The position numbers and the translations under genes were made by a program. The notes under the pieces were generated by a model. It did no database searches, was not told the origin of the DNA, and was given only the letters and a program-made list of their open reading frames with translations. A stretch of DNA of 57,116 nucleotides from Hyphochytrium catenoides (Eukaryota > Protista > Hyphochytriomycota): contig FLMG01000390.1 of assembly GCA_900088475.1 (NCBI GenBank), positions 1 to 57,116 of the forward strand. Direction: 5' to 3'. Position 1 is the stretch's first letter. Every line of letters starts with the position of its first letter. Shown piece after piece: positions 1,968 through 57,116 of this stretch.

Positions 1968-2004
<37 letters not shown>

Positions 2005-6532: not shown

Positions 6533-6559
6533 TACTTTTTCAATGGCGCTCTTGTCGTA

Positions 6560-6810
6560 GAACTTCTAGGGGAGAAGATGTGTCAAAGATTTCCAAGAAG
6601 TAGCTTCTGAGCATAGAAGAAATCCTTTCCATTTCGTCTTTTCCCCTAGCGCATTCTATCTGTCGTCGAGGATTCGCTCAATATCCCACACGAGCTCATT
6701 GGTTTCTGGGTCAATAAAGGGTTTAGAGTAAGACTCCCGGCGGTCGTTGCATTCTTCCACGTGTGGAGGGAAAAGATATGGACAGGCTGTGCAATTCGGA
6801 AGCTCTTACT
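6560..6810 (-). pseudogene. Ty3/Gypsy (chromovirus-type) integrase C-terminal chromodomain remnant
   Basis: Minus-strand translation ELVWDIERILDDR*NALGEKTKWKGFLLCSEATSWKSLTHL fits the chromodomain pattern (W.IE.IL..R...KWKG...E.TW...HL) and contains a stop. Confidence 0.55.
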
Positions 6811-13500: not shown

Positions 13501-16500
13501 GAAGGGAAAGAGAGAGAATTTTAAGCTCAAGCCACGGCTGCTGCCCTCACTCTCCTACCTCCATACAGTAGTCAATCGCCCAGAGGTGGAAATCTGCCCC
13601 AAGGATCCCGGCCCTAGTCTCTCCTAGCTCCTCAAACACCTGAACAAGCAAAGGAAGAGAGCGAATGCGGCTCATCTCCTTTTCCAGCCCCATCAAAAGC
13701 TCGTCAGAGGGTCGATAGCGGGCATCTCTCGTAGCCTTCCTCAACCGCTCTAGGAATTGGTGGAGAAGGAAGGATTCTTGCTGGTTGCTGTTCTACTCTC
13801 CCAGAAAGCAAGCAAGGTAATGGAGAGGGAGGGAAGACGTACGGCGGCAGTTAGAGGAGGGAACAGTCTATGTCAAGGCAACAGATAGTAGAGAAGAATT
13901 TCTATTAGTTAGTTAGATCGTGCGTTGAGAAAGAAAGCATTTTACATATGCGGGACAAACGGAGGAGACAAGGGACCTGAGACTTTAAGTTCAAAAGCCG
14001 AGTGCTTACCTGTGAGAGGTAAGAGAAGACTTTCGTGAGACTCTTCTCTCTCAGCACAATCTCAGAGATCTTGATATTGATGACATGGCCCGCACTGGTG
14101 ACAGGGAAAGAGACGAAGCACCGTGCCCGGCTGTCTCTCCCTGGCTCAAAGGAGGTACTCTAGACGGGAGAAGATGTGGTAGGCGTAAGACCGTGACATC
14201 ATTGGAGAAATAGGAAAAAAAATAGATACGAGTCAGAGTGTACAAAAGGGCAGAATATGGAACTTTCTTTTCAATCTTCAGCAAGGGCCAGAATGTGAAG
14301 CCCTGCTCTTTACTCTCTGTCATCAAGGCTCTCGTCGTTGCACTACATAACACTCGTCACACTTGCTTACCGATATGATCCTTGCTTGAGGGCCCACGGG
14401 GAGGACCATCACCCTGGGTCCATGGCGGGCCCTCCACAGCTCGAGAAGCCCTCTAGGTGGCGCGTAGATGGCTAAATATAGACCATAGGAGACCTCTGGA
14501 TGAAGAAGGTCCGGATCGGAGAGGACAGTGCCAGAGCAGGTAGAGTGAGAGCGAGCAAGAGGGGGCCTCTCTCCCGCCTTCGCCCCTTCTCGAGTCCTGG
14601 TCTGAGGTTTAAACTGCTCAGGAGACTGCAACCAAGCAATCTGTGCGTCCCTATAGCCCTTCCAGTTGCGGATAACCTACAAATAACACCAGCAGTTGAC
14701 CATATCGCCGTCGATGAAGAAAGACGTTAAAAGAATATCAGTCAGACAAGACGGGTAAGACTACCGTCTCAGGAAAAGGAGTGCTTTAGCGGCCAGGTAA
14801 AGGCTAACAGAAAGGTCACCCATTAGAAAGTGCCAACAAGGTAGAAAAGTCGAGAGTAGCAAACCCCAACAACTAGAAGGCGATCAACATTTGAAACTGA
14901 ATCGCCTATCAAGGACCTCCACAGTGAAAGGGACTCACAAGAAAATGCTTTAGATCGAGCAGCAGCACCCTTCCAAAGGAGTCAGTGCAGGCGGCGAGCT
15001 CCCCGTGCGGGCTCACGATCACTCGCTCAATCTGCCGTCGAGGATCAGACAGACTTGCGCCTAGAGGCACACTGTCAGGAGGAATGCCCGTCATGTTTTG
15101 TTCCTCCTCCGCTGGGAGAGACGATGAAGCATCTCTAGCGTCGCCACCTCCTGATGACCATCCCCAGCTCTTGGCGAAGGACGAGACCTAACACGAACAA
15201 ATCAGAAGAGAGCAGATAGGAAGATGAACAGCAGAGAAAAAAGATGTGCAAGAAGGAGATTCAGACCTACGCTCCGACCTAGCACTTCACGAAGAAACGT
15301 AGAGCAAGAGTTTTTGCAAGATGAGGGAAAGCCGAGGACAAGGTAGAGACAATTACTGAGGCGTAACGTCAATAAAAGAGGAGCTGAGGATAAGGGACAG
15401 AGTATGTTACGACTGCAAAGCGACCAACGTGTGTCTCTCTCTAGGTCACCCTGGCACGAGCGCCATTTTCCTTTCTTCTTACCGCTGAGAAGGCGACAGA
15501 AGCCACCTTGGATGCAACCACTGAGGCTAACTGTCCTATATCAGCTCCTCTCGGATCTATTCCCTTCGTGTATAAGGAGAGGCAGGGCCCTCTTCCTCCT
15601 CCTAGCACATTGCAAGAACCCATACGATGGTGAGACTGGAAAAGCGAGGGAGGGGAGGGCCCACAGTAAACAGCCATGTTCAGCCTCTCTTGACCGGCGA
15701 GGAGCCACTTGCGGCAATGGATAGGCTTGGAGAGCAGAAAGGAATCACTTCCTAGCCTTTCTCTTGTGGTTTGTTCTCTCGCTTTCCCGGCTTTTAATAT
15801 CTCAGAGAGCGAGAGAATAACCAAGACCGAATTATCATGCAGGACCCAGAGCTGCGTCTCCTCTCCTTCCCTTCCCCCTCCGGCCTCAGAACTGGAGAGA
15901 AGTGAATCTGCAACTAAACTGCCCTGAGACCGAGAGATTTGGATGATCGAAGCATCTTCAAATTTCTAGGAAATGGGAAGCCGAAAGCGAGAACGACAAG
16001 ACCAAGAAGTGAGAGAAAGAGTGTTATTTATGTCACCGAGAGAGAAGGCGAAGGCGGGAAGAGCAAAGTGGGCAAGCTCTCTCGGGAGAAGGAAGAGGAA
16101 TGGACGGGATAAGCAACAGCAGAGACTGAGGAATAGCAAAGCAAGTCACAATAGAAAGGGATGGACCCTCATCCTCACGAGTCACACCACCAAGACAGGG
16201 GCAAAGCCCATGGAAGAAATGTAAAGAATGAACACGGCCAAGTCTCAGAAATTATAGCGCAGATTAAATAGCACCAGGAGAAAGAGGGAAGAAGAGGAGG
16301 CAAGTGTGAATTGTTAAGCGACGCGATCGACAGAAGAAGAAAAGATCCTCGACGGTGCATAAATGCGTGATCATTGGAGGATGACCCACGGCGCTCAGAT
16401 CGCCTCAGTATGACGATACGATGGACTGAAATCAGGAAGGGACTGAAACAAGGACTGTAGAGATGGAGAGACACGGAGAGGGCGGACAAAGGGAAAGCTA

Positions 16501-21403: not shown

Positions 21404-22489
21404 ATGCCACGCCACTGTGACTCTTACAAGGCTCCAACTTTTGGTACGAGGTGCCGGGAGTGTTTCCAGCTTGCAGAAGTGCATGCTTCTCCATCCCCAT
21501 CTACCTCTAACGCTACCGGCCATAGAAATGGCTCAGCTCCTAGTCTATCACATAGATTGGAGGAGTTTCCCATCATTGAAAAAGGGGCAACAAAAGGGGA
21601 AGAAGAGCCTCTCATTGAGAGTCTAACAAACTCGATTAGAAGAGTAGTCGACAGGAAGTATACTGGCACATCTTTCAACCACTCAATCAAGCATGTGGCC
21701 TCACTTCCTGCAATGAAAGTGAAAGAGGAGAGCTCTGTTATTCACGACGAGAAACTTGGCCCTCCGCTTGCTTCACCTCCTCATCCTTTCTCTTCGGCAG
21801 CTGGCAGCCACAACGAGGAGTTGAAATTCAGGAGCTCCAAAGCAAGCTCCGCCAGTACTCTAAACCGGTATCAAGATGAGACAGACAGCTCTTCAGCGTC
21901 TGAAGGTCCATTAGAAGTGCCGTCTCCACTCTCCGCACATGCCTCCACTGTCGTATTGCCTGTGGGTGATCGTGCCTCGAAGAACTACGGGTCTAACAAG
22001 GGGCGAGCTAAGCAGACTCACGAGGATAGGGAAAGACGAGAATGTAAAGGCAGAGAGCAGTCACAGAGCAATCTGAAGTCCCCTTCTCTCCTCTCTGCTC
22101 TTTGGAAGAGCTCCTCAACTGCACCTATGTCATGCGACAAATGCCGGGATAGTTTCAGCTGGAAGAAGCGCCGTCATCGTTGCCGTCTGTGCGCTCTGTA
22201 CGTTTGTGAGAGCTGCTGCAAAAGAATCCAGCTTCCTTCGTCTCTTGCGCTCCATAAAGAGTTAAAGAAGGTAGATCGAAGGCTCCCACAGTGGGTCTGC
22301 ATTGAGTGTGTGAGCAGCCAGATAAGAAAAATTCGGACTTTGAGTGAAGGAGACCTTGACCTCAAGAGCATTGAAAGGATGAAGCAGGAAGGTAAGCTTT
22401 GCTCTCTCTATCACGCGCGCGTCCTTGCTCTTGTACATACTCAGGCTGTTTGTTTGAGAGCCTTCTTAAGCTTGGTTTATTGCATCTGA
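21404..22489 (+). CDS. FYVE-type zinc-finger protein; true 3' end may be spliced (GTAAG donor near 22392, followed by an N gap)
   Basis: 361-aa ORF with W...CDKCRDSFSWKKRRHRCRLCALYVCESCC...WVCIEC (eight-Cys FYVE pattern), a Ser-rich linker, and an N-terminal C-x11-C-x2-C-x6-H motif. Confidence 0.8.
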   Translation: MPRHCDSYKAPTFGTRCRECFQLAEVHASPSPSTSNATGHRNGSAPSLSHRLEEFPIIEKGATKGEEEPLIESLTNSIRRVVDRKYTGTSFNHSIKHVASLPAMKVKEESSVIHDEKLGPPLASPPHPFSSAAGSHNEELKFRSSKASSASTLNRYQDETDSSSASEGPLEVPSPLSAHASTVVLPVGDRASKNYGSNKGRAKQTHEDRERRECKGREQSQSNLKSPSLLSALWKSSSTAPMSCDKCRDSFSWKKRRHRCRLCALYVCESCCKRIQLPSSLALHKELKKVDRRLPQWVCIECVSSQIRKIRTLSEGDLDLKSIERMKQEGKLCSLYHARVLALVHTQAVCLRAFLSLVYCI

Positions 22490-25119: not shown

Positions 25120-26039
25120 ATGGAGGAGAGCTACTACGACATCGACTCCATTCTTATGGAGGAGGAACTGCTAAGCTCAACCTTCGAGGTCGAAGTCATA
25201 GCCTGCGGTTTCATGGACCAGACCTGTCCCTACGAGGACTTGCCCGAAGGTTCTAAACTCGAGCTTCCGTTCTGGATAGCAGCGCCGTTGCAGGCTGGCG
25301 GGATTGTGCAGATTGAGCTGCCAAAGATGTTCCGGGAACGCTTTAGAAACCAAATCATTGCAGGGCCAGCGGTGGTAAACCTTAGAGAGCGGTCGCCTTA
25401 TTACTTTCAGGTTCGATTCCTACCCTTGGCTTATCTTCAACATCCCCCATTGCTCCTCTCTTCTGCTTCACGACTTCCTGAGGTCCTCTTCTCCTCTACA
25501 TCCTCCTGTCAGCCCTGCTATCGTCTGTCTCTGTGCGGCGTGCAGGCTTCGTTCTACAAGCGCCTAATATCCCTCTAACCTAGGCCTTCTCTCTCACTCT
25601 CTGTGGAAATGTATATTGCCTAGCTTGAACGGTCTTCTGACAGGACCACTTAGCATGACTTTCTTTTCGTCCCTTCCAACTGGCTCTCCCCCCGAACGCC
25701 AATGATTCTGTCATCTAATTTTGGTGCTCTCTCTCCCCATTCTCCACATTTCTGTAGCTGGGAAGCCGAATCTCTGCTATGATGGAAGAGACTGAGTCTG
25801 CAGCCTTGGACAGTGTCCTCCGCACTGCATTCTGCGGGGAAAGGTTCAACCTTATCCTCGATGTCTCCATGAACTCGGGCCTTCAGGACACTTCTGGGCT
25901 TATCAAAACACTGACAATTATGGAACTCGCTTTATTCAACGCGGGAGTAGATTGTGCACACAGCTTTAGGGCATGGAAACAGCGAGACATGCAGGGAGAT
26001 GCGGCCTTTTCTTCATGGAAGAGAAGAAGAGTCTTCTGA
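25120..26039 (+). CDS. PSF3: GINS complex subunit 3 (Psf3), 2 exons
   Basis: Exon 25120-25410 (MEESYYDIDSILMEEE...LPEGSKLELPFWIA...VVNLRERSPYYFQ), GT-AG intron, exon 25758-26039 (LGSRIS...ERFNLILD...LTIMELALF...FRAWK). Confidence 0.93.
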
Positions 26040-26894
26040 GACAACACTTCGGGCATCGAAGCGCACCTGAAAAGTAAACAGAAGAAGGGAGAGAGAGACG
26101 AAGAGAGAAAAGATTGGTCAGCGATGCGATGTCGTTATCGGGTGGAGGCTGCAGAGAATGAAGTACTATATGCGAGCATCAGTAAACAGAGATCTCACTC
26201 ATTAGCCACTTTGCAGCGGCATCAGCAACGAGGAATTCTACTATAGAAACTCGATCATCTGCTCAGCAAACGTAAATGATATGACATGCGCTTTCACTCC
26301 CTGGTTTATTGTCTGCCTCTCGATCCTTCCCTTGTACTCAAGTTGACCCTTTGTCTACCCTTCTCCCTCTTCTCACGTGACTTTCGCTCCTTTCTGAACC
26401 TCGTACCTTGTAAATTTGTCTCGGACACAGGCAGGAGTCTGTGGCTAGACGAGGAGATCCGCGTCTTTTGAAGATAAACAAGATGTCCAGGGTAAGCAAC
26501 CAAAAGCCAATAATTCACGCTAAGCGCACGGTCACGCACAGAGCCTGCCGAAGACAGGAATAGGACAAGACAAGAGCACTCAGGCAATGGTCAACAAACC
26601 ATTACTGACTTTCAGTAGGAAGAGGCGGGTAAGAGGACGACAAAAGTGCATCGACGGCTAGTGGCGGCGCTTGGAAAGCACCATAGAGCACCGGACAAAA
26701 GGCAACAATCAAGAAGACTGCCAGAAGACTTGCCCCAAGTAGGAACTCCCATCATTAGGAGAAACAGAGACCACATCTCGCATCTCTGACCCCTGTGGCA
26801 CCGTTCCAACCAAGCAATGCTAATACGATGCTGATCTCACACTCATCTGCTAAGCAGAACGAGGACGAAGACAAAGAGACGAGGAGGAAAGAGA

Positions 26895-26926
<32 letters not shown>

Positions 26927-27143
26927 GCCCAAGTGAGGAGCATTTGACTGGCAGGCAAGTACGCAGAGCAGCCTGACCGCTCTGTCACTCTGTACCCTTG
27001 TTCTGAACCAGCTCTATTTAGATTACAAAATAACGTCCAGTGTAAGTACCGTATTCTAAATCTCTGCCCTTGGTGTTCAGATTGATTCCCTGCTGGGAAT
27101 GCAGCACTACCTTAAAGGTCATTCTGGTGGAGAGAGCAGAGGC

Positions 27144-27147
<4 letters not shown>

Positions 27148-27222
<75 letters not shown>
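27148..27222 (+). repeat. Perfect (GA)n microsatellite, ~75 bp
   Basis: Uninterrupted GA dinucleotide run; many shorter runs occur elsewhere, several next to assembly gaps. Confidence 0.95.
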
Positions 27223-27225
<3 letters not shown>

Positions 27226-27475
27226 AAGAGGGGAAGAGAGAGAGAGAGGAAGAGAGAGACAGTTAGGACAACGAAACAACGAAGTGGCGAGACAAAGGCG
27301 GAGAGACAGAGCTTATACATTGACGGTAGCGCGCTGTCTGTAGAAGAGAAAGAGAGACAGAAGCTGCTCCATCGCAATCGAAGACCGGCATAGACCTCTT
27401 GCACTTCTATTAAGAGAACGGAGACCTAGGACAGAGTGAGATCGAGACGATCACCAGCGATAGCCGACTGGCAGG

Positions 27476-28211
27476 ATGGTGCACGGCAAGAATATCAAGA
27501 GACGCGGTAAGGTGAAGGTCACCCGCCGCGCTCGGCCTAAAGTCAAGTTCACAGGGAGACAGTTCTCTAGCGAGCTGGTGAAGGCGCAATGGGATCAGAA
27601 CAAGACATTGAGACAGAACTATGAAGCTATGGGAATAGAGCCAGATCCCAACTCCTTGCGGTCTCTTAAGGAGTCAGACAGCAGAGGAAGGAGCCCAGAG
27701 GAGATTGAGGAACAGGAAGGAATGCTCTTTGATGTGCCAGAGAGCGATAACCTTCGGGGCTCCAGGAGAGGGCTTATAATGTCCGAGGAAGAGCAGGCTT
27801 ACCTCCGACGTCTTATGGCCAAGTACGGAGAGGACTACGAGGTACGCCAGAGGGCAGCGCAAGGGTAGCGTGAGTGTATAGGATGAGCAGAGATGAGGGG
27901 ATGGTGCGGCAGGGAAGGCAGAGAATAGGGAACAACGAGCCAGACGAGAAAGAGACAGCGCTTGAGAGAGAGGGGAAGACGTTATGATTGTTAGACAGCA
28001 GAGGCGCCGGAGCGGGAGAGACACGCAGGAGAGGCGGGAGGCAGAGGAGATTGGCGAGTCGGCCGGCCTTCTCAACGTCTCTCTTCTCTTTCTACAGGCG
28101 ATGTTCCGCGACATAAAGCTCAACAGCAAGCAGTGGACGGCCGCCAAGCTCAAGAGACGCTGCGCTAGGCTTGTCCTCGTAGAGCATGAAGCAAAGAAAG
28201 AACAGAATTGA
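27476..28211 (+). CDS. NOP16: Nucleolar protein 16 (ribosome biogenesis), 2 exons
   Basis: Exon 27476-27841 (WDQNKTLRQNYEAMGIEPDPN...MSEEEQAYLRRLMAKYGEDYE) and exon 28098-28211 (AMFRDIKLNSKQWTAAKLKRR): Nop16 signature motifs. Confidence 0.93.
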
Positions 28212-28837
28212 AGGCTCTTTCTCTCCTCTCGAAAATTCTGCTTCTCTTCTACCTGTTGTCTCTCTCTCTCTCTCTCTCTTTATCAATCTATCTATCTATC
28301 TATCACCTCTTTCTTATTGGCCAAGCTGCTTCCTCTCTTAGTTCCGAGGGCCACGGAGTGATGTTCAGACCATGGACTTAGGGAATATGTCTAGTCACTA
28401 TCTTTTCTTATTTTTGCCTCTTTCGTCCCTCATGCTCAAAACAGTCTGCCTCTCTTCTTCCTTCTTGTCTTGCTCTTTCTCGCTCTGTCTCTCTTCTTAT
28501 TTCTCTCTCTCTCTCTCTTCCGTGGCCCGAGAAGCAGATGAGAACCTGTGTATATTACTCTCGCCTATGCTCATTCATTAAATAATCTCCTGTCTTTTAC
28601 TCCATCAAGAGAATATGCTTCTCGTGGCTTCGGCGATATAAGAAAGTAAAGGAGGGGAGGGAAACCAGGAGAGGAGGAGAAAGTGTGTGACTCTGATAAG
28701 AGAGAACGAGCCACAAGAGCAATAGCAAAGACGAAGAGAAGAGGAGCCTCACTTGAAAGGGAGGGAAGAGAGTTTGGCTACAGGGCGATGGAAAGAAGGC
28801 CGGGCCCATTCTAAGCAGCAAAGAGAGAGTCTTGAGA

Positions 28838-30245
28838 TCATCCTCGGGAAGCAAGGACGGACATTTTGTCGTTGACTTCGTGGATCTCCGAGAGCAAGTT
28901 CTTGATCTCCTTTGCAAATCTGTCAGACGAACGTTTCGAGGGAGAGAGAGAGCTCGACGGACTTTTCAAGCTGCCTTTCCCTCCCTCTTTCTCCCTTTTG
29001 GGTCGCGCTGGTCGAGGTTGGGAGAAGGTGGGACTTATCGTCTCATTCTCCACACTGGAGCATTCCTCTGCCAGCTCTCTCTCTGCTTCACTCTCGGTAG
29101 CTCTATGGAAGGAGAAGGAAAGAAAGTGTCACGGCGAGCGGAAAGGGATGGACTAAAAGAGAGAGAATAAGAGATAAAAAGAGAACCTACGGCGAAGTCT
29201 GGGAGGAACATGGAAAGAGAGAGAAATAGAAGAGAGACGATAACCTCAGCGTCTCCCTTATTGCCTCTCTAAAGTTGGTACTTTTGGCTCCGTTGGGATA
29301 GAAGAGTGGTCTCTCTCCTGGACTGAGCGGCGTGGGGCGAGATAGACCCAGAGGCGCAAGGTCTGGGACCTGGATGGGCTCTACTAAGAGAGACTGGTGG
29401 GGGCTCGAGGCGTCAATCCCTAGTGGTAGATACGGAGGTGAGAGCAAGGAAATGGGACCAGTGACAGACAGAGAGAGGAAAGAGAATTCTGACAACGGAA
29501 AAAAAAAGCGAAGAGATAAGACGGCAACCTAGAGGAATTCGAGAAGAGAGAAGACAGAGTGGAAGAGAGCAATCAACAAAGACTGAAGAGCGGAAGCAGG
29601 AGAAAGGACTAGGACATTGTTATGACACTTTTGTCTGGCATAAAGTGACATGCGGACTTAAAAAATTGACAGATGGAGAGAGAAAGAGCGAGAGAGAGGA
29701 GAGAGAGACAGAGACAAAAAGAGAGAGAGACACAGAGATAGAGAAAGAGAATGAGAGAGGGGGCGAAGACGGGGCAAGAAATTGCCCAGGTACAGATAGA
29801 GAGATGTCCTAAGAGAGAAGAGCGAGGCGGCGATAGAGACAGCAAGGAGCGCGTTTAGAAAAGGGATTTAAGGAAGAGACGCCTACAAAGGAAAGCCGAT
29901 GCTGCAAGGAACAAGGCAAGAGGCATTGCCAGGAAAGATTATGAGGAGGAGATGAGGGAGAAGGAGAGGAGAAGTGAGGGATAGCAGAGAAGAGAGGACT
30001 CTACCTCGAAGAACCTGTGGGAACTGGGAGCTGCTGATGGTGATGACGTCAAGATAAGGAGCTCCAGAGTGTTTTGAGGTTCCAGTTCTGGGACTCTGCT
30101 CCGCCCGACGAGAGCAGCTGGAGGCGTCCATCTCTCCCTCAGGACAGAGTTGAGAGAGAGAGAAAGAGACAGGGACAGAACGAAAGAGAGAGAGAGAGAG
30201 GGGGAGGGAGAAAGACAAGGAGGAAGAGCGACCTATTGGGGGCAC
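28838..30245 (-). CDS. Hypothetical spliced protein of unknown function; boundaries uncertain
   Basis: Exon-like stretches (~30000-30140, ~29250-29430, 29100-28838 ending RFAKEIKNLLSEIHEVNDKMSVLASRG*) separated by AG-rich tracts (CT-rich on minus) that look like introns. Confidence 0.35.
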
Positions 30246-31096
30246 AGAGAGCTCCGAGAGCGTAGAGACGGTGAATTAGGGTAAGAGATGAATCATAGAT
30301 TAGGAGTGGCTGAAAGGAGCATGGAGACAGGAGGAAGAGACAGAGCTAACGAAGAGAGAGATCGACGCTAAGGTGCTAGCTATTCAGAGAAGAAACTGCG
30401 CTCAGTGTCTCAATGATCGCATCTCCAGAAGCTTTGGACTCAGCTCTAATATCTCCTCGCTCTCCCTCTCTCTTTTCTCTCTCTTCTGTCTCTCTCCCGC
30501 TCTCGTTTCTCGTTTTCTCTTGGTCTGCTGCTCTTGCAGCTTGCGAAGAGGAGAGCAGAAGGACGGAAGAGGTTAACTGTGCAGCAAGATGTTACCTGGA
30601 AAGAGGAACGCACCTTGAGGAGGGACTGGCACAGAGAAGGGAATGGAAGGAGAGAGTAAAGAGGATGGAGGACCAAGAAGAGTTGGTCAGAAGAAAGACA
30701 AAGAGTGAGTGAGATGGAGAAGGGAAGGAAGTCGAGAAACAGAGCAGGAGAGAGATAGTGAGGCACCCGAAGATGGAAGCGCAGCGGATAATCGACGAAG
30801 GAGACCAAGAAGAGAGAAACTAGCCTTTTCTGACCTTGAGGGACAAGATAGCAGAAAGGGGAGAGATAGAGGCGGTAGGAGGATTGGAGGCGAGGAGGAA
30901 AAGGCGAGAGAGAAAGGAGAGAGGAGAGAGGAGAGAGAGGACAAAAGAGAAAGAGGAATTCCGAGACAATAAGAACCCGGCAAGATGTTGTATATCAGGA
31001 ATAGAGTGGAGACGCGGAAGAGATGGGAGAAGAAAAGACAGAGGAGGGAAGAGAGAGTAAAGTGTGAGGAGGTAGGGAGACAGAGACAGAATTGGG

Positions 31097-31127
<31 letters not shown>

Positions 31128-31992
31128 GCAGAGATGTTGAGCTCCAACTGCCTGCGCTTCTCTGTCTGACAGCCTGTGAGGGACAACCCCAGGCCAAGAC
31201 ATCACCAAGTCACAAAGGAGTTACAAAACGCTGACAGTGAAGCGAGGGAAGTGACTTTTTATACCTCAACTTCCGGTGCTTTTCTTCCTCAATTACACCA
31301 ATTAAAGAGGGCAAAGGGTCGATAACGGGCTTACACATACAGGCTGCTTTGGTTTAGCCGTTAACGTCAAATGACTCTATCCTGTCTTTTGTGTTGCTGG
31401 TCTGTCATCTCTCTTCTTGATCCTCTCTCCTTCTCTCCGCTCAGTGCCTCTCTCCCTTGCAGGTGCCCTGCCTCCTCCTTTGTCGTCTCCTTCTCTCTCT
31501 TCTCTCTCTCTTTCATAGCTCAAGCCTGCGCCTCTCTCTCCCAGCATCTGCTGGGGAGGATGAGTCACGGTTCTAGTTCCTTTGTCTCTGTCCCTCTTCT
31601 CTAGCTTGAAGGTGGTGAGGCTCAAAGGTGCCAGCAAGAAGACCTGCGCAGAGAAAGAGAGACAGAGACAGAGACAGACTTGAAAAAGAGAGAGGGGCAA
31701 GGGAGCTAGCCACATACGGAAGCGATAGGTGGAAGAAGAGGCGGTGTATCCCAGACCAAAAGGAAGAAAGGCCGGGCAGCTGCCATCTCTGTCGGACAGG
31801 GGAGCGGTTCAGCTGCCATTTGAGATCTGTTTTTCTCTTCGCTTAGATTGCCGTCCAGGAGGAGGAAGATCATGCTGCACTCTTAACGCTTCTCGTACGC
31901 TCTTCAGAACCTTTATCTTCTCTCTCCCTCTCTCTTTTCTCTCTCTTTCTCGCTCTATTTTTTTCTCTCTCTTAATGGCTTGTTCTAGCACG

Positions 31993-34900
31993 ATGCCTAG
32001 AGCTAAGGGACAAGGGGATGGAGGTGTCAGAAGCCTTGCAGCGTGGAGGCAGGAGGAAGAGGGCCAGACATCCTCCGTGGACGTACAGGCACTTTTGGGA
32101 AGAGTGAGAGGACAGCTGGCGCTGATCGGCCCAGGGTGAGCGAGATTCTACATCAAACCCTTCTCTCTCTCTCGCTCTCGCTCTCTTCTTTCTTCTTCTC
32201 TCTCTCGCGCGCGCTGTCTATGTTTTGCTGTGTACTCTTTCCTTTCCGTTTGGCGCGCACATCGGTAGCTTCCTAGTTGCTTTATTTGCTCGCCGCCTTC
32301 TTACCTTTTCACTTCTCTCTCTCTCTCCTTCATTTCACAACTGACTTTCTTGATCGTTCATTACATTTCTCCCCTCTCGTCTCTCTCTCTCTTTAAAGGG
32401 TGCTCCGGTCTCTCTCTCTTGGGCTTGAGTCCTCGCCCAACCTTTCCTTGGAGCCGCTCCTGGAACTTCTCCACCGGCACAAGCTTCCTCTGAGCAGACA
32501 GGTAACCGGCAGCAAGCGGGTCAGAGGGTCAAAGATGAGAGGAGAGAGAAGGGACTCACGAAGATTTGGAGAGAAGGGGGCTAAAAAAGAAAAAGGAGTA
32601 GAGACTTCACGGTCAGCGCAGAAAGAGGAGGCGGGAAGTCTACGTTGACAGAGAGACTGAGGGCGAGCACTGGATCTTTGACAGCTGGATAGGAAAGATC
32701 TTACTAGATCATTCTCTAGCTCTTGTTCTTCGTCTCTCCCTCTCTCTCATGTCAAGAAATCATTGCTCTTTCCTCGTGTGCTAATTCATCATTTTCTGTC
32801 TGCCTCTTCTTGGTAGGAGCTGAAAGCTCTTCTCCTATCGCGACCTGACCATAAGCAGCGTCCAGCGGGTCTTCTCATCCTGGATATTCTTCGGGTAAGC
32901 GCGTGAGATGGGGAAGAGCGGGGGAAGAGAGAGAGAAGAGAGAGAGCGAAGAGAGAGACAGAGAGAGAGAGAGAGAGAGGAAAGCACACGCAGCGCCGCA
33001 TACTAGGAGTAGGAGCCATAGAGAACAGAAGTGCTCGTAAAGGATAGAGAAGACAGAGATCTCCTTAGTAATCGGATGTGACTGGGCTGAATCTAGTCTC
33101 AGCCTACTTCCAGTCCTTTCTGACTCTACTGATTCTCTCTCTATCTTTTTATCTCTTGTTATCTCCCCACTTCCGGGCTCTCTCGCGTCCTCTGTCTTTC
33201 CTACTGGCACCGTCTAGCCCAAGCTAGCAGGAGAGCGTCTGGAATGTGTGCACAAGGCCTTCCACTTTTTGGATAGAGAAAAGAGAGGGAAAGTGAGTCT
33301 CTCGAGGGTCCTCGAGCGTATTGACGGCGAGAGGCATCCAGACGTCATGTCCAGGAGAAAGACGAGAGAGCAAGTGATGGCAGAGATCAGAGCCTGCTAT
33401 GGAAGGTCAGACGGGGGAGAAGGAGAGAAAAGATTGGGGAACGACGAGGTAGAGATAAAAGGCTGGGAGAACTCTCTCTCTCTCTTGAGTGCGTGTGTGC
33501 CAAACGAAGAGTATTTTAAGCTTATCATTGAGGGCATTTGGTCCAGAAGGGAAGATCAGAGAGAGAGAGGGAGCAAAGGCGTGCATGCTCCCCCTCGACC
33601 TTTCTCGCTCTACGGTCAAAGGGAGACAAGCAGTGTGAAGGTTCCATCTAGTGTGCTCTTTCTCGTGGGAAACCTAAGGAAAGAAGTAGGAAAAAGTGGC
33701 ATTCGGGGCTTCTTGGGCCTGAGGAAAAGCTTCGAACGCTTCCAGGGCAGCGATAAGAGAGGATTGAGCCTGACCGACTTGAGAATAATGTTGAAGGAGA
33801 ACGGCCTCTCCCTCTCTGACTCCGAGTTGCGCCTCCTCTGGAGTGCCCTAGAAGAGGCAGAGAGAGGCCAAGTCATGAGCGAGACAGTTCTGGGGCTCTT
33901 TCTCCTCCCTCTGAGCAGGAGAAGACAGCTACTGGTGCGGCAGGCCTACCTGCGCTTAAGCAAAGAGAGTAAGGATAGACGAGTTCTTCCGCAGGGAATT
34001 CTCTCTTTCTTCAATTACGCGCGCCACCCACTCGTCTTATCAGGACAAGTGAACCCTCAGGCCCTTCTGCAGGAGTTTCTGGCAACATTTGAGGTGCCTG
34101 ACGAGAGAGAAGGCGAGATCGACAGAGAGAGATGGGAAGGGTACTTCACGGCTCTCAGTAATACCATCCCATCAGATGAACTCTTCGAGCTGATAATGCA
34201 CAACGTCTGGGGAGTCCGGGGAGATGAAGAGGAGGAGCTCTTCTTTCCTGTTACTCCCGTCACGAACGAAGAGGAAGGGAGAGGAAGAGAAGGGAAAGAG
34301 ACTCTAGCCGTAGCCCCACTCCCAGCAGCTACAAGGGTGGCCCATCCGCCGCAGGAAGTGGGATGGTCGGAAGCGGAATCCATTGCCGTAAAAAGAGACA
34401 ATGACAATGGTCCCTCCACTTTCTCAGGAAGTTCCGGCGAGAGAGAGATGCCAGCAAGAACCTTAACTCCCCTATCTCCTGACCAAGGACTCATTCACTC
34501 TAGGAACTCGGTTATCAAAAAGGGGAATCCGCTTTCTTCCGCCTCGATAGACCCTATAGTATGCGCAGAGGCAGACAGGATCCGCAGGCAGCTTGCCTCT
34601 CGGTCCATCCATGGCATCTGCAGACTCTACAAGGAGCTGAAGAAGAATGCGGAAGTCGGCCAGAAGATAAGTGAGAGGCGGGATGGCAGGGAGAGAGAGG
34701 AACGACGCTATCTCTCTTTTGGAGGATGGAAGAGGGCCCTGCGCGCTTGTGAGCTGCAGGTGCCGGACAGCAGCGCCCGAATCTCATTTGACGCCTTGGA
34801 TCTTGCAGGCTCAGGAAGCGTTAGCTGCGAGGATCTCCTTCGTCTTCTTAGGGGTGAGGCCGCGTACAAAGAGAGCCGGAGAAGCCTCATCCTCTCACAT

Positions 34901-36694
34901 TTTGATCGCATGGATGTTGGCAAGAGGGGCTCACTTGATCCACGTGCACTTCTGGAAGGATACCATCCTGCCAATCATCCCGAGGTGGTGAGAGGGTCTC
35001 TCTCTGCAGCTGCATTGCACCAGGAGTTCCTCGAGATGTTTGAGATCTCTGACGAGAAAGAGGGAATAGTCTCTCGAATGGACTGGCTAACTTACCATCT
35101 GAATGTGAGCGCCGCGGTGGACTCTGATCAATACTTCCAGGCCCTTTTAGAAGGCACCTGGGGGCCCTCGGGTTCGGCGAGAGGCGCAGCTGAGAAAGAA
35201 GATATTAAAGTTCTCAGGCGTCTCGTTCCATACACTGAACTTCTTCCCGCTGGATCTCAAACAGCAGCCGTCAGGGGACTGTCTGAGTCTTCTGCCGATC
35301 GTCAGAGCCGCCTCCTCGTTTATTCTTCTGGCCAAGGAGCAAGCGCCTGTTTGCATGGAGATACGTCTGTGACAACTCCCTCGGAGTCCATTCTTCTCTC
35401 CCCGAGGAGAGCAGGAAAATCGTCTCGTATGCGAGGAGTTCCTCCTGGTGTTCAGGTGATCATCTCTTTTCTATATAGAAATATCCGTTCAAGGGGTTTG
35501 CGCGCTTTCATCCTCCTGCTGAGGCAGAGCCGAAAGCAGCCTATTGTTACTACCTTAGAGCTCCGCCGGCTGCTGGCCGAAGCTGGAGCCACGTTGCCTG
35601 ATCAAGATCTGCGAGCCCTAGCCGCTCACTTTGAGGACTGCGGAGCTGGTGGCGTTGACATGGGGGAGCTTCTTGAGGCCCTTCGACCTCCTTTGAAGGC
35701 GCAGCGCCTGCAGCTAGTTGAAGAAGCCTACCGGGGTCTCTGTTCAGTCGCAAGCGTACCCGTACGGCCATCAACAGGGCAGGCAAAGCATACAGCTGCA
35801 CCTCTATCGGCCGACAGCTCCTCTTGTCGCAGTCCCGGATCCGCAATCCCCTTAGTTACAGCAGAGAACATCCTTAGAGCATTTAATCCAAGTGGACACC
35901 CAGACGTGACTCTCAGAGGAGTAGCAGCAGAGAACGTGCTAGAGGAGTTCCTAGAGACTTTTGAGGTCGGAGCAGACCCTGCTGGTCGCATCCCCTTCGT
36001 TCTCTGGGAAGACTACTTCCGGTCCGTGAGCTTTATCCTTGAGAATGAGGAGGAGTTCCAGAGACTAATGAGAGAGAGCTGGCATGTACAGCTTGCGCCA
36101 GAGATTGCCCAGTCTAGCTCTCCTTCTCCCTTCAGCACCGCCTCGCCTCCTCCCGCAGGTAGCCCTCGCAAGAAGCGGTCGGGTGTTGAGCATGACAGCC
36201 GTAAAGGAGGCGTCACTACCGCATGGCGAGAGTCCTTCAGTTCTCAAATTTCACTCGGCGTAGTGCCGGGCTACTATTCGAGCGAATCAGCTCCTGACCA
36301 GGCCACTCCAGGCGCAAACCGTGGCTCAGGTGCGAGTGACGATAGAACGGGGAAACGGACAGGCAGGCGGCCGAAGGCTAACGCAGGGATCCCAGATCAA
36401 TTCCAAAGCAGCCTTAAGGGGCAAATCTTCGAGGAAGCGAGAAAAAGAGATCAACAAGAGGAAACAAGGCCACCACCATTGACACAGGGAAAACTTGTCC
36501 GCAGCCTCGCTGAGGTGACCTTGGGCTCTCTAAAGGAACAGGAGCTCCTCTCACCCACCTCTGCCTCTTGTCCAGCTTATGCAACCGGCTTTGCGTTTGT
36601 CAGTCCAATCTCCCCATCATGCTCCGAAACCGTGGGCTCAGTACCCGTCAGAAGAATCTCAGACACATTCCGAAGCTCTCTTACTCTGGGTTGA
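31993..36694 (+). CDS. Calcyphosin-like (CAPS/CAPSL-type) EF-hand repeat protein, ~1270 aa
   Basis: Small exons 31993-32135, 32399-32501 and 32817-32894 join in frame to a long last exon 33218-36694. Four units of R..LV..AF..LD...HP.V..G...EFL.TF...W..YF..VS.....D..F..L....W, with EF-hand-like loops (DLAGSGSVS, DVGKRGSLD). Confidence 0.85.
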
Positions 36695-51450: not shown

Positions 51451-52118
51451 NNNNNNNNNNNNNNNNNNNNNNNNNNNNNNNNNNNNNNNNNNNNNNNNNN
51501 NNNNNNNNNNNNNNNNNNNNNNNNNNNNNNNNNNNNNNNNNNNNNNNNNNNNNNNNNNNNNNNNNNNNNNNNNNNNNNNNNNNNNNNNNNNNNNNNNNNN
51601 NNNNNNNNNNNNNNNNNNNNNNNNNNNNNNNNNNNNNNNNNNNNNNNNNNNNNNNNNNNNNNNNNNNNNNNNNNNNNNNNNNNNNNGTGAGAGCTTTTTC
51701 AGAGCTTTGTCAGCTTCGGCTCTCAACTCCTCGTCGCAGGTCCATACTCCTCGAGTGTCCTCTCCCGAATGTAGACTTTGTCTTACGCAAGTGGAGGGGA
51801 CAATCCCGAGGTATGGAAGAAGTTCTCAGAGCTGAGCTGCAGGTAACGCCTTCGTAATAAGAAAGTCGGCTATTGTGCTCTTGTGTGATGAACTTTACAG
51901 AGCTGGGTGGCAATGCCTGAAGCTTCTGTGTGAGCACAATCTAGATGAAACGATAACAAAGGGACTGGGTATTGCTTTATGATTGAGATTTCTCTGAATG
52001 ATTGCTGAGTCCTGAGAGTCTGGTCTCGAGATCTTTGCTCGGCCCAGCTTCCCTCATCATCTCTCTCTCTTCTGCTGTTCCTGTGTTCTTCTGGAAATTC
52101 TTCTCACATCCCTCTTTC

Positions 52119-52396
52119 TGTTGGAGTCTGAGGTCACAGCTATGTGGACTACAAGCTGGCAAGCTTAACTACCCAAGTTTCAGCTCTAAACTCCCAGTAG
52201 AAGCAGAGATATGAAGCAAACGAAATGTCCCTGTTTATATCTATGGCTTATGGTCAGTACCCCGGAATACATTCAGGACTGACTGTTCTAGACAGGGATT
52301 TCTCTATGACTGGACTACAAGCTGTGACCTCAGACTCCAACACCTCCCCGCAGCTCGAACTCCCTCTTGTGAAGGGTCGAAGCTGAACATTCGACA
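52119..52396. mobile_element. Fold-back composite of two LTR-B left ends, flanked by 5-bp TSD CTTTC
   Basis: 52119-~52310 is the LTR-B 5' part on plus; 52320-52396 is the inverted LTR-B start. CTTTC at 52114-52118 and 52397-52401. Confidence 0.8.
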
Positions 52397-52738
52397 CTTT
52401 CTCATAACACAGGTGTACCCGTAACGTCTATGTCCCTGAGAGCTAGGTGTGTCTAGAGAGTGACAACGAACATTGGTAGCACTCAACATTGTGGTCCTGA
52501 TGTGCGAGGATTGGTCTACTTATTAGTGGAAACTGAAGCTCCTGTAAGAAGTAGTAAGAGATGTTTTCTGCATGTTTGGCTCCGGTCGAAAGTGAGATAC
52601 ACTCTGCCTCAGTGGTTGAAGAGCCCACTATGTCTTGCTTCTTAGCCTTAAACCACCGGTCTCTAGAGTAAGAAAATAGCCAGAGATGGATTTCCTGTCG
52701 TAGATCATTCGCCCAATCTGTATCTGTGAAGAGTTGTA

Positions 52739-52993
52739 TGTTGAACTGTGATCGATGCTGAAACCAAAAAGTGTACAGCGGACGACGCAGAGGGGAAAAT
52801 CCCTGGTATATAAAGAAAAACGGAGATTAGTCAAGAGTACGTTTGGTGTATGGTGCATACTGGTTAGGGTGTCGGCATCAAAGACAGAGGTCCTGGGTTC
52901 AAATCCCGGAGCGTACAAAACTTTTCTCCGGTATATCCAGACACCCCCCAATATTAATTCAAAGTGCTCACCATCAAATGATAAAATCTAACA
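52739..52993 (+). mobile_element. Solo LTR-like element (family A, ~255 bp) containing a tRNA-like cassette, copy 1
   Basis: Ends TGTTGAAC...ATCTAACA. Flanks TTGTA / TGGTA (5-bp TSD with one mismatch). Interrupts the Copia between RT and RNase H; host protein motifs resume on the other side. Confidence 0.85.
52837..52917 (+). tRNA. tRNA-like sequence resembling tRNA-Pro(AGG), with a degenerate or intron-like anticodon arm, inside the LTR
   Basis: Acceptor stem GTACGTT/AGCGTAC, D-arm GTGT-ATGGTGC-ATAC, TTAGGGT, variable loop AGGTC, T-arm CTGGG-TTCAAAT-CCCGG (box B). TATATAAA ~30 bp upstream and TTTT just downstream. Confidence 0.7.
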
Positions 52994-53790
52994 TGGTAGT
53001 GTTCGACTCTGATTGTTGTCTGGGGGTTGATGTTCCTCCTAGACGTAAGTAGTTAGTAGTCCTTTTCAGATATCTCAGAATTCGCTTAACTGCAGCCCAG
53101 TGTATCTGCCTATAGGTGGTCATATGCTGGCTAATTGCTTTTACTGCAAAGGCCATATCCGGGCTGGAGGGCTACCATTTGCATAAGACTGCAACAGAAT
53201 TTCTGTAGGGTACTTTTCTTCAGAAGTGAGAGTAGAGATAGAGTCTGCCTTGGGCAACTTGTCACCAGGAGCACCGGGCGTACTGACTGGGTTACAATTC
53301 TTCCATCCCGTAGCGCTGTAGGAGGTCTAGGAGGCCGTCCGCACCAGAAAAGTCGGCTCTTTTCCAATGGGTCAATGTTAGGCTTAATAGGGTTTAGGCC
53401 CTATCCAATACCCCCAAAATGGCGGCGGTCTTGATATCACATGGTGCACTTCTAGATTGAGCGTGGCAGAGAGAGAAGACAGCGCACAGTGTCGTGTCCA
53501 ATGACTGGGGCAAAGACCTCTCCAGTGTCAATACCTTGCTTTTGTCGATTGCCAAGAGCGACCAGACGACTCTTGTAGTTCTACTTGTCGCGGAACCGTC
53601 GCTCTGTAACTTGACTCTAAAGACCCACTGACAGCCGATGACATGTGCGTCTGGCGGTGGAGGCACTAGGTCGTAGACCTCATGAGCCTGCAGACGTAAG
53701 CTCGGAGGTAATGACGGCTAACCATTCTGTAGCTGAGGTCCAGAGAGCCCTTCGCGTACTGTCCTTGGTTCAGAGACATGGAGAAGATTG

Positions 53791-54046
53791 TGTTAGATTT
53801 TATCATTGGATGGTGAGCACTTTGAATTAATATTGGGGGGTGTCTGGATATACCGGAGAAAAGTTTTGTACGCTCCGGGATTTGAACCCAGGACCTCTGT
53901 CTTTGATGCCGACACCCTAACCAGTATGCACCATACACCAAACGTACACTTGACTAATCTCCGTTTTTCTTTATATACCAGGGGTTCTTCCCCTCTGCGT
54001 CGTCCGCTGTACACTTTTTGGTGTCAACGTCGATCACAGTTCAACA
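53791..54046 (-). mobile_element. Solo LTR-like element (family A) containing a tRNA-like cassette, copy 2, inverted relative to copy 1
   Basis: Reverse complement of 52739-52993 with about seven differences, all outside the tRNA-like core. Inserted just upstream of the Copia EPRT motif. TSD is degenerate (CAACA/CAATC on minus). Confidence 0.85.
53867..53947 (-). tRNA. tRNA-Pro-like sequence, identical to 52837-52917
   Basis: Exact reverse complement of the copy-1 cassette. Confidence 0.7.
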
Positions 54047-55507
54047 TGTTGGCCTGATCTAATGGCAAAGAGAGAGAGACTTCCCGTACCAGTCTATCCG
54101 TCATAGGACCGAGTGAAGGGGTGGTCGCGGCAGGTGGGGAGGGAGAAGAATCTGCGGGTGGGTCTTCATCGTCCCCAACCTCGGTGTCGCTTGTCTTTAA
54201 GGAACTATCTCTCGCTTTGCTGCGATCTGGTGCCGACGCTGGGGAGCCAATGGCATCTGCTGCACCTGCTGTCCCGAGCGAGCGTGCACTTTGTCCTTCC
54301 TGTCTCACTGCTGCCTCTTCTTCAGCACCTAGTGGTCCTGCTATTCAAGTGTAGTTGGTTCTTCGCTCGCAATTATTGGGAACAGGGAGACATAAGCATG
54401 AGGCTTTCAATAGAAATGCACCCGAGCGAGACTCGTCACTAATCACATCACGCCGCACCCTGCAGAAAAGATATACCCAGAGCTCCATGCATCAAGCTTC
54501 TTGAGCATCGTCGACGGCTTCAAGGCATACGCAAGTGAACCAAAGACGCGTAAATGGCCAACATCAGATTGCTTCCCGTACCATTTCTAGTACGGAATAG
54601 AGCCAGCGAGAGAGCCAGTGGGGCAGCGGTTTGACGACGTGAACAGCAGAGGCCAATAATGCATCTGCCCAAACGAGGCTAGGCAGCTCAGCAGCAATTA
54701 AAAGGCATCTCGTCGCTTGCATGACAGTTCTCATCAAACGTTCACAACATCCGTTGCTAGAGGGTGAATAAGCAGGTAAAGGTGAGTGCAGGAATGCGCG
54801 GCGAGAAAAGACACTGCGAGCAGCGTCGCTAATGAACCCTTCCCCGCGATCGGAGCGAATCTCCTTGACACACTGACACGTCTGGTTCTCCTCCATAAAG
54901 AGAATAAGCTCCTCCAGCTTCCTTTCTGCCTCTGCTTTGCTTCAAATTCAAAAAAATTCCACAAAGCACCTCAGCGAGTGATCATCTACAACGAGTAGAA
55001 AGTATACATAGCGGGCTTGGTAGCTACGAGTATTGACAATGCCGACGTCAACGTGCAGAAGTTCAAGCAGTCTTGTTGTTTTGCGAGGCTGAGTGTGGTA
55101 AGGCTTACGTAATAGCTTGGCTAGGTAGGATGCAGGTCTCACAGAGGCACGGCTGTTGACAAGCTCTATCAAGGGCTATACCCGAAGCCTATACGGCTAG
55201 TCTTTGGATATCTGTATTATTGAGATAACTAAGTCGTTTATTTGTGCCACAGGGCGGTAGGCCCTTGCGTGCTCGTAGCTGCGGCTAGTCTTGGAGAAGA
55301 GTCACTTTGGCCCCGTGCATCGGCAGTGTCCGAGGAGTAATAAGCGGTTCCATTATTGGTCAAACCAATACCCCTCACTTGTTCTTGTGAGTTTGACTTT
55401 GCAATGTCCTTGACCAATGAAGGACTGAGAGTGTAAGCTCCATTTGAGGTAAATAACAACACTGCTTCACCAGAGGAGTCTTGGATGTATTGTCCAATAG
55501 AGAGAAG

Positions 55508-55628
55508 ATGTTGGAGTCTGAGGGCACAGCTATGTGGACTACAAGCTGGCAAGCGTAGCCACCCAAGTTTCAGCTCCAAACTCCCGGTAGAAGCCGAGAT
55601 ATGAAGGAAACGAAATGTCCCTGTTTAT
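55508..55628 (+). mobile_element. LTR family B, short-form 5' fragment, truncated
   Basis: TGTTGGAGTCTGAGGGCACAGCTATGTGGACTACAAGCTGGC...AAATGTCCCTGTTTAT matches 52119-52240 and 56425-56545. Confidence 0.8.
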
Positions 55629-55800
55629 TGCGAGCCCGAAGGGTGAGGCTCAATTTCAACCCACAGCAGGGGCTTCAGCACAAATGGACTTTTTCGTGTT
55701 TTGAGTGTGTGTGTGTGTGTGTGTTTTTGATCAAAATTTCACTATTTGCTTTTTCACTAATCACTGTTTGGGCTTTTTCTTTGGGTTTGGGTCTTTGTTT
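55624..55800 (+). mobile_element. Possible Helentron/DINE-like non-autonomous element end
   Basis: TTTATTGCGAGCCCGAAGGGTGAGGCT hairpin motif (25/27 identical to the reverse complement of 6131-6157), followed by a (TG)n microsatellite; truncates an LTR at a T-run. Confidence 0.35.
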
Positions 55801-56341: not shown

Positions 56342-56759
56342 GCGGGGAGGTGTTGAATGTTCAGCTTCGACACTTCACAATAGGGGAGTTTGAGCTGGGG
56401 GGAGGTGTTGGAGTCTGAGGGCACTGTTGGAGTCTGAAGGCACAGCTATGTGGCCTACAAGCTGGCAAGCTTAACTACCCAAGTTTCAGCTCTAAACTCC
56501 CAATAGAAGCCGAGATAGGAAGCAAACGAAATGTCCCTGTTTATATCTATGGCTTATGGTCAGTACCCCAGGATACCTCCAGAACTGACTATTCTCGACA
56601 GGGATATCTCTATAACTCCATATCTTAGGGTTATTAGGAATTGTTGGCATAGTCAGAATAGCTCTAGATTATGGGACCTCAGTTGGGCTTATAAGTGGAG
56701 CACTCTCATCTAATGACATTGTCCAATCATCCCGCATAATCCAATAGGTTATGGGCCCA
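56342..56759 (+). mobile_element. Complete Copia LTR (family B) with upstream PPT(s) and downstream half-tRNA-Met PBS
   Basis: PPT GCGGGGAGG 56342-56350; TGTTGAA at 56351; second PPT GGGGGGAGG 56397-56405; TGTTGGA at 56406 and 56425; end TCCAATA at 56746; GGTTATGGGCCCA at 56747-56759 (copia/Ty5-type PBS). Confidence 0.85.
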
Positions 56760-56948
56760 CGCATCCCCCAGGACTCGGAAACTTGTTCTGAGGCCTCTGA
56801 GTCAACCACTGGACCATTGCGATCCCGATCGAGACCAAGATCAAGTCGGCCACCTGGAGCAGCCAATGAGCTCCACTGGGCAATAACGGCTACCCGGTCT
56901 CGCCGGCGGACAAAACAAATAGCCAGTACCGGCTAACGGCACAGTCAT

Positions 56949-57116
56949 ATAGCTGCTAAAGGACTTCTAAAGGACAGATTTGATGTAAAGGACTTAGGAG
57001 AACTCCAATACTTCCTAGGAGTAGAAGTTACTAGGGATCGAAAGAATCGGAAGATTTACCTTCGCCAACGGAGATTTATTCAAGACCTCCTGAAGCGTTA
57101 TGGCATGGAAGATTGT
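56949..57116 (+). mobile_element. Copia reverse transcriptase fragment, runs off the window end
   Basis: IAAKGLLKDRFDVKDLGELQYFLGVEVTRDRKNRKIYLRQRRFIQDLLKRYGMEDC: RVT_2 C-terminal motif (F.MKDLG...FLG.E...L.Q..YI..LL.R.GM..C). Confidence 0.9.

Follow-up and report, generated by a model that had tools for sequence, protein, structure and literature searches.

The window analysed here, a stretch of 57,116 nucleotides from Hyphochytrium catenoides (contig FLMG01000390.1, assembly GCA_900088475.1), contains two solo long terminal repeats (LTRs) of a retroelement family, here designated T1, which is securely placed as a terminal-repeat retrotransposon in miniature (TRIM) of the Helenus, or TRIMp3, type. 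Within each LTR there is an 81-nt tRNA-like module derived from tRNA-Pro, and the primer-binding site (PBS) of T1 is exactly complementary, over 14 bp, to the 3' end of this module (its final 11 nt, ..CGGAGCGTACA) extended by CCA. The best reading of these sequences is that T1 probably supplies its own primer for reverse transcription, by way of the tRNA-like module in its LTR.

T1 elements and their copies in the window

The pair of ~255-bp units with TGTT...AACA ends that was described in the initial annotation is present (Table 1), in inverted relative orientation, on which that annotation was silent, with 797 bp between the copies. There is a 4/5 target site duplication (TSD) at copy 1, as had been reported, and the flanks of copy 2, CAACA/CAATC, match at 3 of 5 positions. 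The layout that had been proposed, in which TATATAAA is followed by the 81-nt tRNA-like segment and then by TTTT, was found in copy 1, where the TATA box lies ~30 bp upstream of the tRNA-like start, and is mirrored in copy 2. The count of about seven changes around an identical tRNA core is exact: the two copies differ at LTR positions 18, 20, 24, 59, 62, 98, and 238, none of which is inside the tRNA-like segment. Only solo LTRs are present in the window, where the internal region is absent, and the two units are independent, the remains of two separate insertions left by LTR-LTR recombination. Copy 2 and its flanks (window 53786-54060) recur on contig C3263 (locus L022), with identical flanks, which may represent a haplotig of a heterozygous diploid assembly or a segmental duplication.

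The 61 Mb genome is available as a short-read draft assembly of 4759 contigs. Taking copy 1 as the 100% reference, there are at least 181 candidate LTR copies genome-wide, with conserved TG..CA ends; the 40 that were scored are 94–100% identical, mostly across positions 1-255. Several full elements of ~633 bp were found, made up of an LTR of ~255 bp, a non-coding internal region of ~124 bp, and a second LTR of ~255 bp. The internal region, which is conserved between neighbouring direct LTRs and of which there are ~41 in the genome, starts with TGGTGTACGCTCCG (the PBS, TGG...) and ends with the purine tract CCGGGGGAG. Two of the full copies have perfect 5-bp TSDs, AGAAG at L066:1246-1878 and CTAAA at L085:1245-1875, and there is a perfect 5-bp TSD at 14 of 34 solo LTRs, with a 4/5 match at 5 more. 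Copy number and ends, TSDs, and two-LTR copies with a PBS and polypurine tract (PPT) had been named in the initial annotation as checks on its proposal, in which the units were solo LTRs from a non-autonomous LTR retroelement, and on each of them the proposal stands. T1 has two direct LTRs and less than ~1 kb of non-coding sequence, with a PBS after the 5' LTR, a PPT before the 3' LTR, TG..CA ends, and a TSD of fixed length, as is expected of a TRIM.

The LTR pairs inside single T1 elements are 91–97% identical. That copies reach 97–100% identity and LTR pairs up to 97%, with perfect TSDs, supports recent activity of the family. T1 is undescribed in the published genome paper of Hyphochytrium catenoides, in which transposable elements make up only 1.79%, and T1-specific 22-mers gave no match in metagenome scans.

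The tRNA-like module and its match to the primer-binding site

The order of the T1 LTR is the unique 3' region (U3) with its TATA box, the tRNA-Pro-derived module, a T4 tract, and the unique 5' region (U5), the boundaries between U3 and the repeated region (R) being inferred. The acceptor stem of the module, GTACGTT/AGCGTAC followed by A73, is intact across 7 bp, one of them G.U, and the T arm is also intact. There is a box A-like motif, TGGTGTATGG, and a box B, GGTTCAAATCC, which serve as the box A (TRGCY..YGG) and box B (GGTTC) of a Helenus-type module. Boxes A and B, the T4 tract, the upstream TATA box, and the strong conservation of the module together make this a candidate promoter for RNA polymerase III (Pol III). 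When the 81-nt module is compared with the 72-nt host tRNA-Pro(AGG) gene, 54 positions match. The anticodon arm, which the initial annotation had found irregular, is interrupted in its stem by 11 inserted nt, and ARAGORN returns both window modules as 'tRNA-???' with a 4-base anticodon. A functional tRNA gene was rejected on these two features and on the failure of the module with the Rfam tRNA model RF00005; only sub-threshold T-arm matches were seen in Rfam, the sole partial one being to mascRNA, far below threshold. The module is tRNA-like and not a standard tRNA.

The trailer that follows the T1 module, AAACTTTT, resembles the trailer AAACTTTTT of the host tRNA-Pro(AGG) genes, which suggests a gene or a precursor, rather than a mature tRNA, as the source of the captured module. 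The host tRNA-Pro genes have T4-T5 tracts within ~5 nt of their end. Two of the host tRNA-Pro(UGG) genes are in tandem, 1.2 kb apart, at L031 1471-1543 and 2699-2770 (contig C388).

The energy of the PBS duplex is -28.3 kcal/mol with T1's own module, compared with -7.7 to -13 kcal/mol with the 3' ends of host tRNA-Pro, which read ..AAGCGCCC (AGG), ..AACGGCCC (UGG), and ..AACAGCCC (CGG). The acceptor stems of these host tRNAs are GGCGCTT (AGG), GGCCGTT (UGG), and GGCTGTT (CGG), with a discriminator C in all. The 13-nt PBS word has 26 exact matches in the genome, all within T1, where 24 are PBS sites and 2 are truncated LTRs ending in CCA; there is thus no autonomous element with the T1 PBS among them. 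In a scan of ~300 kb of repeat DNA, T1 was the only family found to have a PBS that matches its own element. The Helenus property of a PBS that matches a host tRNA, and not the element's own module, is not seen in T1.

The strongest of the alternatives, though an unlikely one, is that an ordinary host tRNA ending in ..GAGCGTACA, from which the acceptor stem of the module was derived, serves as the primer, and that the module is an internal Pol III promoter only. LTR elements by default use a host tRNA for priming, as does every described Helenus family (Kojima 2024, PMC10886601), and a short-read draft in 4759 pieces could lack the gene. Searches of the whole genome for a host tRNA by its T loop followed by ..AGCGTAC or ..CGTACA gave 78 and 83 matches, respectively, all of which are T1 LTR variants, so that no gene with a standard T loop and ..CGTACA is present outside the T1 LTRs. 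The acceptor pair GTACGYT...RGCGTACA at normal tRNA length was found only in 4 internally deleted T1 copies and in 4 non-tRNA chance matches, against 3 in the control, and no host gene carries the pair GTACGYT/RGCGTAC-A at that length. Although the module resembles tRNA-Pro in its body, its acceptor stem is found in none of the three host tRNA-Pro isoacceptors. A role as promoter alone would also leave unexplained an acceptor stem without shared variants, and the pairing that is kept by double changes between T1 and its sister family T2, both of which are described below.

Conservation was assessed among 62 distinct full T1 LTR copies, in which a variant present in at least 4 copies was taken as shared, marking replicating lineages. 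Shared variants are found at 3 of the 81 tRNA-like sites and at 38 of the 174 other LTR sites (Fisher p=9e-5), while private changes are distributed nearly evenly, at 0.020 per site per copy in the tRNA-like segment and 0.027 elsewhere. No shared variant at all falls in the acceptor strands or the D arm. The acceptor stem is outside boxes A and B, and its conservation is therefore not explained by a promoter-only role.

The T2 family, a divergent sister represented by a solo LTR that turned up in a box-B scan (Table 1), is homologous to T1 along the length of its LTR, with a score of 153 compared with 75+-10 for shuffled sequences. Its module differs from that of T1, with a D arm of tRNA-Gln/Glu type, the acceptor GGGCATG/CTTGTCC-A, and the 3' end ..CTTGTCCA. 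There are double changes between the T2 and T1 acceptors at pairs 2-71, 5-68, and 7-66, and in each the pairing is kept. The PBS predicted from the T2 3' end, TGGTGGACAAG, has one match in the genome (C3799:32964), directly after CAACA, the end of the T2 LTR, where ~0.03 matches at that spacing would be expected by chance.

A low-copy relative of T1 is present at L007 787-1060 (contig C2546) and again at C3785:1172-1389, with 74–80% similarity to T1 in the LTR end and leader. It has the PBS variant TGGTGTACGTTGCG / TGGTGTACGTTGCGACC, with no tRNA-like module seen nearby upstream. In this variant there is a T where T1 has a C, which fits a perfect A67-T6 pair and is compatible with the T1 5' strand, and it is possible that this is one covarying position. 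With just 2 copies and without a nearby module, the relative was rejected as a helper for T1. Its LTR is interrupted by a T1 solo LTR that has the perfect TSD GGTTG.

The pattern searches, the conservation statistics, the comparison of the T1 and T2 acceptors, and the snap-back product described below narrow the possibility of a host tRNA primer without closing it.

Priming of T1 and the weighing of alternatives

In the route envisaged for self-priming, Pol III would transcribe the module by way of boxes A and B and stop at the T4 tract, with the TATA box 30 bp upstream serving either Pol III or, for the full-length RNA, Pol II. The module RNA would be trimmed by RNase P and RNase Z and CCA would then be added, while charging would be prevented by the re-coding of the acceptor stem, by A73, and by the disrupted anticodon arm, such that the 3'-OH stays free. 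The matured 3' end could then pair over 14 bp with the PBS of T1 genomic RNA inside Copia particles and prime the minus strand. The primer may be a free small RNA from any of the ~180 LTRs, which is favoured, or the tRNA-like end of the genomic RNA itself. Solo LTRs, including the pair in the window, would still supply primer. The fuller proposal, that the T1/T2 lineage encodes an uncharged, CCA-tailed primer derived from tRNA-Pro, with an acceptor re-coded away from all host tRNAs and a 3' end that co-evolves with the PBS, is judged to have slightly better than even chances of being correct.

Three aberrant sequences, among 73 distinct module ends examined, bear on the pairing. The first, at L098 (contig C3117) 1-372, consists of the complement of internal bases 42-1, a join at TGT microhomology, LTR 107-255, TGT, and the exact complement of LTR 179-1. 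Its inverted part is the module and U3 backwards, ending at LTR base 1, and the structure runs on into Copia RVT_2 sequence. This looks like an aberrant product of reverse transcription, which may have arisen when plus-strand strong-stop DNA folded back, its PBS copy paired with the module in R, and the polymerase extended it. The other two, on the minus strand at L041 ~1000-1180 (contig C1131) and L095 ~1435-1615 (contig C2516), are T1 LTRs from different subfamilies that run from LTR base 1 exactly to A73, followed by CCA and unrelated DNA, with no TSD. These may be opened snap-back hairpins or, equally well, cDNA of a CCA-tailed RNA, and they were consequently rejected as proof of such an RNA. 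Together these sequences show that a polymerase makes use of the complementarity, and not which molecule primes the minus strand.

There are also RNA-library contigs (Logan contigs from four soil metatranscriptomes) that are 85–95% like T1. In these the PBS and the 3' part of the module are unchanged, and the U5, with ~15 changes, is the most diverged part. At a depth of ~2, they cover element positions 139-557, which is from inside the 5'-LTR module, through the internal region, to within 1 nt of A73 in the 3' LTR, and leave the U3 of the 5' LTR and the U5 of the 3' LTR uncovered. As far as contigs can indicate, a genomic RNA of the form R-U5-PBS-PPT-U3-R with its end at the module would be expected to give this span.

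One alternative, slightly less probable than a host tRNA, is that the pairing occurs in cis with no free small RNA, either as self-priming of the Tf1/Tj1 type, the R-region segment folding back on the PBS of the same genomic RNA, or as a packaging or regulatory stem, with the tRNA shape serving only to fix the site of RNase Z cleavage or the 3' end of the RNA. In Tf1/Tj1 a stretch of the element's own 5' LTR transcript is the partner of the PBS, the 11-nt templated complement in T1 is only ~75 nt upstream of the PBS, one of the soil contigs ends within 1 nt of the A73 of the 3'-LTR module, and the L098 sequence shows intramolecular pairing in use. The complement is, however, 67–81 nt into the predicted transcript and not at its 5' end, and the minimum-energy fold of R-U5-PBS leaves the two segments unpaired. 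In T1 and T2 alike the PBS retains TGG, where their LTRs have AAA and TTT, respectively, which fits a CCA-tailed end, and the ends of contigs are unreliable as the ends of transcripts.

It is improbable that the match is a relic with no present function, in which the module and the PBS came from one lost ancient primer tRNA and the family is now immobile or is primed otherwise. Such a history would accommodate both the lack of covariation among T1 subfamilies and the relative at L007, with its PBS variant and no matching module nearby. It would not readily account for copies that are 97–100% identical, with LTR pairs of up to 97% and perfect TSDs, which indicate recent activity, nor for a module and PBS that are both intact while U3 and U5 vary. 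That the units are ordinary tRNA-derived short interspersed nuclear elements (SINEs) or a chance pair of repeats can be dismissed, their short length and tRNA-like Pol III cassette notwithstanding, since their TG..CA ends are sharp, their TSDs are fixed at 5 bp, LTR-PBS-PPT-LTR copies exist, and none of the ragged ends, A-rich tails, or restriction to two copies that the initial annotation had listed as grounds for abandoning an LTR element was found.

Several observations weigh against self-priming by the T1 module. The fragmented assembly possibly leaves room for a host tRNA that has an unusual T loop or is unassembled. The PBS and the 3' end of the module are invariant in both T1 subfamilies, and there is therefore no covariation between them; the support that T2 would add comes from one solo LTR and one pattern match. 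No copy was found in which the PBS has been 'imprinted' by the module beyond 14 nt, and the resemblance of the T1 leader to the complement of the T arm is weak, with p about 0.04, for which reason the idea that the leader beyond the PBS is a copied T arm was set aside. The model RF00005 does not match the module, even at E<=10 on 116 nt, and processing by RNase P, RNase Z, and the CCA enzyme is an assumption, for which the acceptor and the T arm, both intact, are the grounds. Most Pol III transcripts would end at the T4 tract immediately behind the module and so fall short of a genomic RNA. The RNA support consists of contigs that cover parts of the element, for which carry-over of DNA is possible.

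Neighbouring sequences, related systems, and significance

The features in the window, and the T2 copy, are listed in Table 1. The abundant Copia-type family has 5-bp TSDs, adjoins RVT_2 fragments, and is very abundant around T1, with which it is mutually nested. It has the same terminal bases as T1, TGTTGAAC...ATCTAACA, and a similar purine tract, with a different PBS region. This family is the likely source of the integrase and reverse transcriptase of T1 and is its candidate helper. Open reading frames (ORFs) next to T1 copies gave no Pfam match. The first 19 bases of the Copia-type LTR are duplicated at 56414-56432, and the RVT_2 fragment apparently sits in an internally deleted derivative, which is also present in L006. 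In window 52114-52401 there is a fold-back of two Copia-type LTR left ends, with the arms TGTTGGAGTCTGAGGTCACAGCT at 52119-52141 and 52320-52342, which may be the same kind of snap-back by-product as that of T1.

Table 1. Positions of T1 and Copia-type features in the window, and of the T2 solo LTR elsewhere in the assembly
Feature	Position	Strand	Details
Solo LTR copy 1, family T1	52739..52993	+	255 bp; ends TGTTGAAC...ATCTAACA
Left TSD of copy 1, TTGTA	52734..52738	+	partner 52994-52998 = TGGTA (4/5 match)
Putative U3 of copy 1	52739..52836	+	TATATAAA (TATA box) at 52807-52814
tRNA-Pro-derived tRNA-like gene, copy 1	52837..52917	+	81 nt
T4 tract, candidate Pol III terminator, copy 1	52922..52925	+	trailer AAACTTTT
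Trailer and putative U5, copy 1	52918..52993	+	variable part among copies
Solo LTR copy 2, family T1	53791..54046	-	256 bp; 97% identity to copy 1; ends TGTTGAAC...ATCTAACA
tRNA-like gene, copy 2	53867..53947	-	identical to copy 1 module
TATA and T4 of copy 2	53970-53977; 53859-53862	-	mirror copy 1
LTR of abundant Copia-type family	56424..56744	+	~320 bp; TGTTGGAGTCTGAGG...ATCCAACA in intact copies
Further Copia-type LTR fragments	52118-52311 and 55508-55701
RVT_2 fragment	56937-57116 (window end)		E=2e-6
T2 solo LTR	L045 ~1563-1824 (contig C2923)		TGTTGAGAACTGTGAT...TTCCAACA; flanks GAAAT/TAAAT

Elsewhere in the window there are two ordinary host ORFs on the + strand, one for a 1148-aa EF-hand protein (33248-36694) and the other for a 361-aa FYVE zinc-finger protein (21404-22489), the Atlas neighbours of which are ciliate and oomycete proteins. 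The regions 1-14000 and 26000-32000 are strongly skewed towards purines (GC skew ~0.18; AT skew as high as 0.29), and these stretches carry a degenerate family of short-period repeats, for example at 27089-27296.

Helenus (TRIMp3) elements are TRIMs of 311–1263 bp with a tRNA-like sequence containing boxes A and B in each LTR, which is usually not a functional tRNA, and there are 5-bp TSDs in the Copia-dependent fungal and plant families (Kojima 2024, PMC10886601). They have been reported from fungi, animals, and plants only, and their proposed origin is the insertion of a SINE into the LTR of a TRIM (Kojima 2024, PMC10886601). In keeping with the initial annotation, which knew of no such report for the protist lineage concerned, there are no stramenopile or other protist entries for Helenus in that paper and its supplements (PMC10886601). 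The PBS of Helenus elements matches the 3' ends or anticodon loops of host tRNAs, and complementarity to their own module was sought in that work, the one survey of these elements, and none found (PMC10886601). T1 shares with them the tRNA-like LTR module, the PBS and PPT between the LTRs, and the 5-bp TSDs, but differs in its stramenopile host and in a PBS that is exact over 14 nt, including CCA, to its own module and that no host tRNA gene fits. Five T1 words of 11–13 nt are absent from the text of the six supplement files of Kojima 2024, which is a weak, word-based test of kinship; Helenus is regarded as polyphyletic, and sequence kinship is therefore not required for membership.

The self-priming elements Tf1 and Tj1 have a PBS complementary to their own LTR transcript, and the primer is the first ~11 nt of the mRNA, released by RNase H (Levin 1995-1998; PMC4600332). 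The PBS of T1 is likewise complementary to its own LTR sequence, and the element would need no cellular tRNA primer. Tf1 and Tj1 are, however, autonomous Ty3/Gypsy elements with no tRNA shape and no CCA, whereas T1 is non-coding, and its complement is the 3' end of the module, ~67–81 nt downstream of the likely transcript start, with a PBS that includes TGG for a non-templated CCA. Cassandra, a plant TRIM, and Ajax are like T1 in carrying a Pol III promoter of small-RNA-gene origin in each LTR, but their modules are derived from 5S rRNA and no link between module and PBS has been described for them. Elements of the SINE2 group are, like T1, short, abundant, non-coding retroelements whose internal Pol III promoter comes from a tRNA; they are mobilized by long interspersed nuclear elements and have tails and variable TSDs, in contrast to the LTRs, PBS, PPT, and fixed 5-bp TSDs of T1. 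Non-decoding tRNA-shaped RNAs that are recognized by RNase P, RNase Z, and the CCA-adding enzyme are found in the Mauriceville retroplasmid and in mascRNA/MALAT1, and in the retroplasmid cDNA synthesis starts at the CCA end. To our knowledge these systems have no sequence relationship to T1, and there is no LTR element among them with a PBS that pairs to the module. All tRNA-primed retroviruses and LTR retrotransposons that we know of so far borrow a host tRNA, while the Tf1 group uses the 5' end of its own mRNA; a self-supplied tRNA-like primer in an LTR element has not been reported before.

The presence of T1 would extend elements of the Helenus type to the stramenopiles, and T1 accounts for part of the inflated tRNA-like counts in the Hyphochytrium catenoides genome. 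If T1 does supply its own primer, a dedicated primer gene on a non-coding element would be a third solution to priming, and the tRNA-like modules of TRIMp3 would gain a function beyond that of promoter. The module and PBS would form a compact two-part system suited to tests of primer choice by compensatory mutation. The pairing would also leave by-products, in the form of snap-back inverted LTRs and LTRs ending in ..ACA-CCA. In that event primer would be produced by every solo LTR, and the proteins of the Copia helper would be all that the parasite requires.

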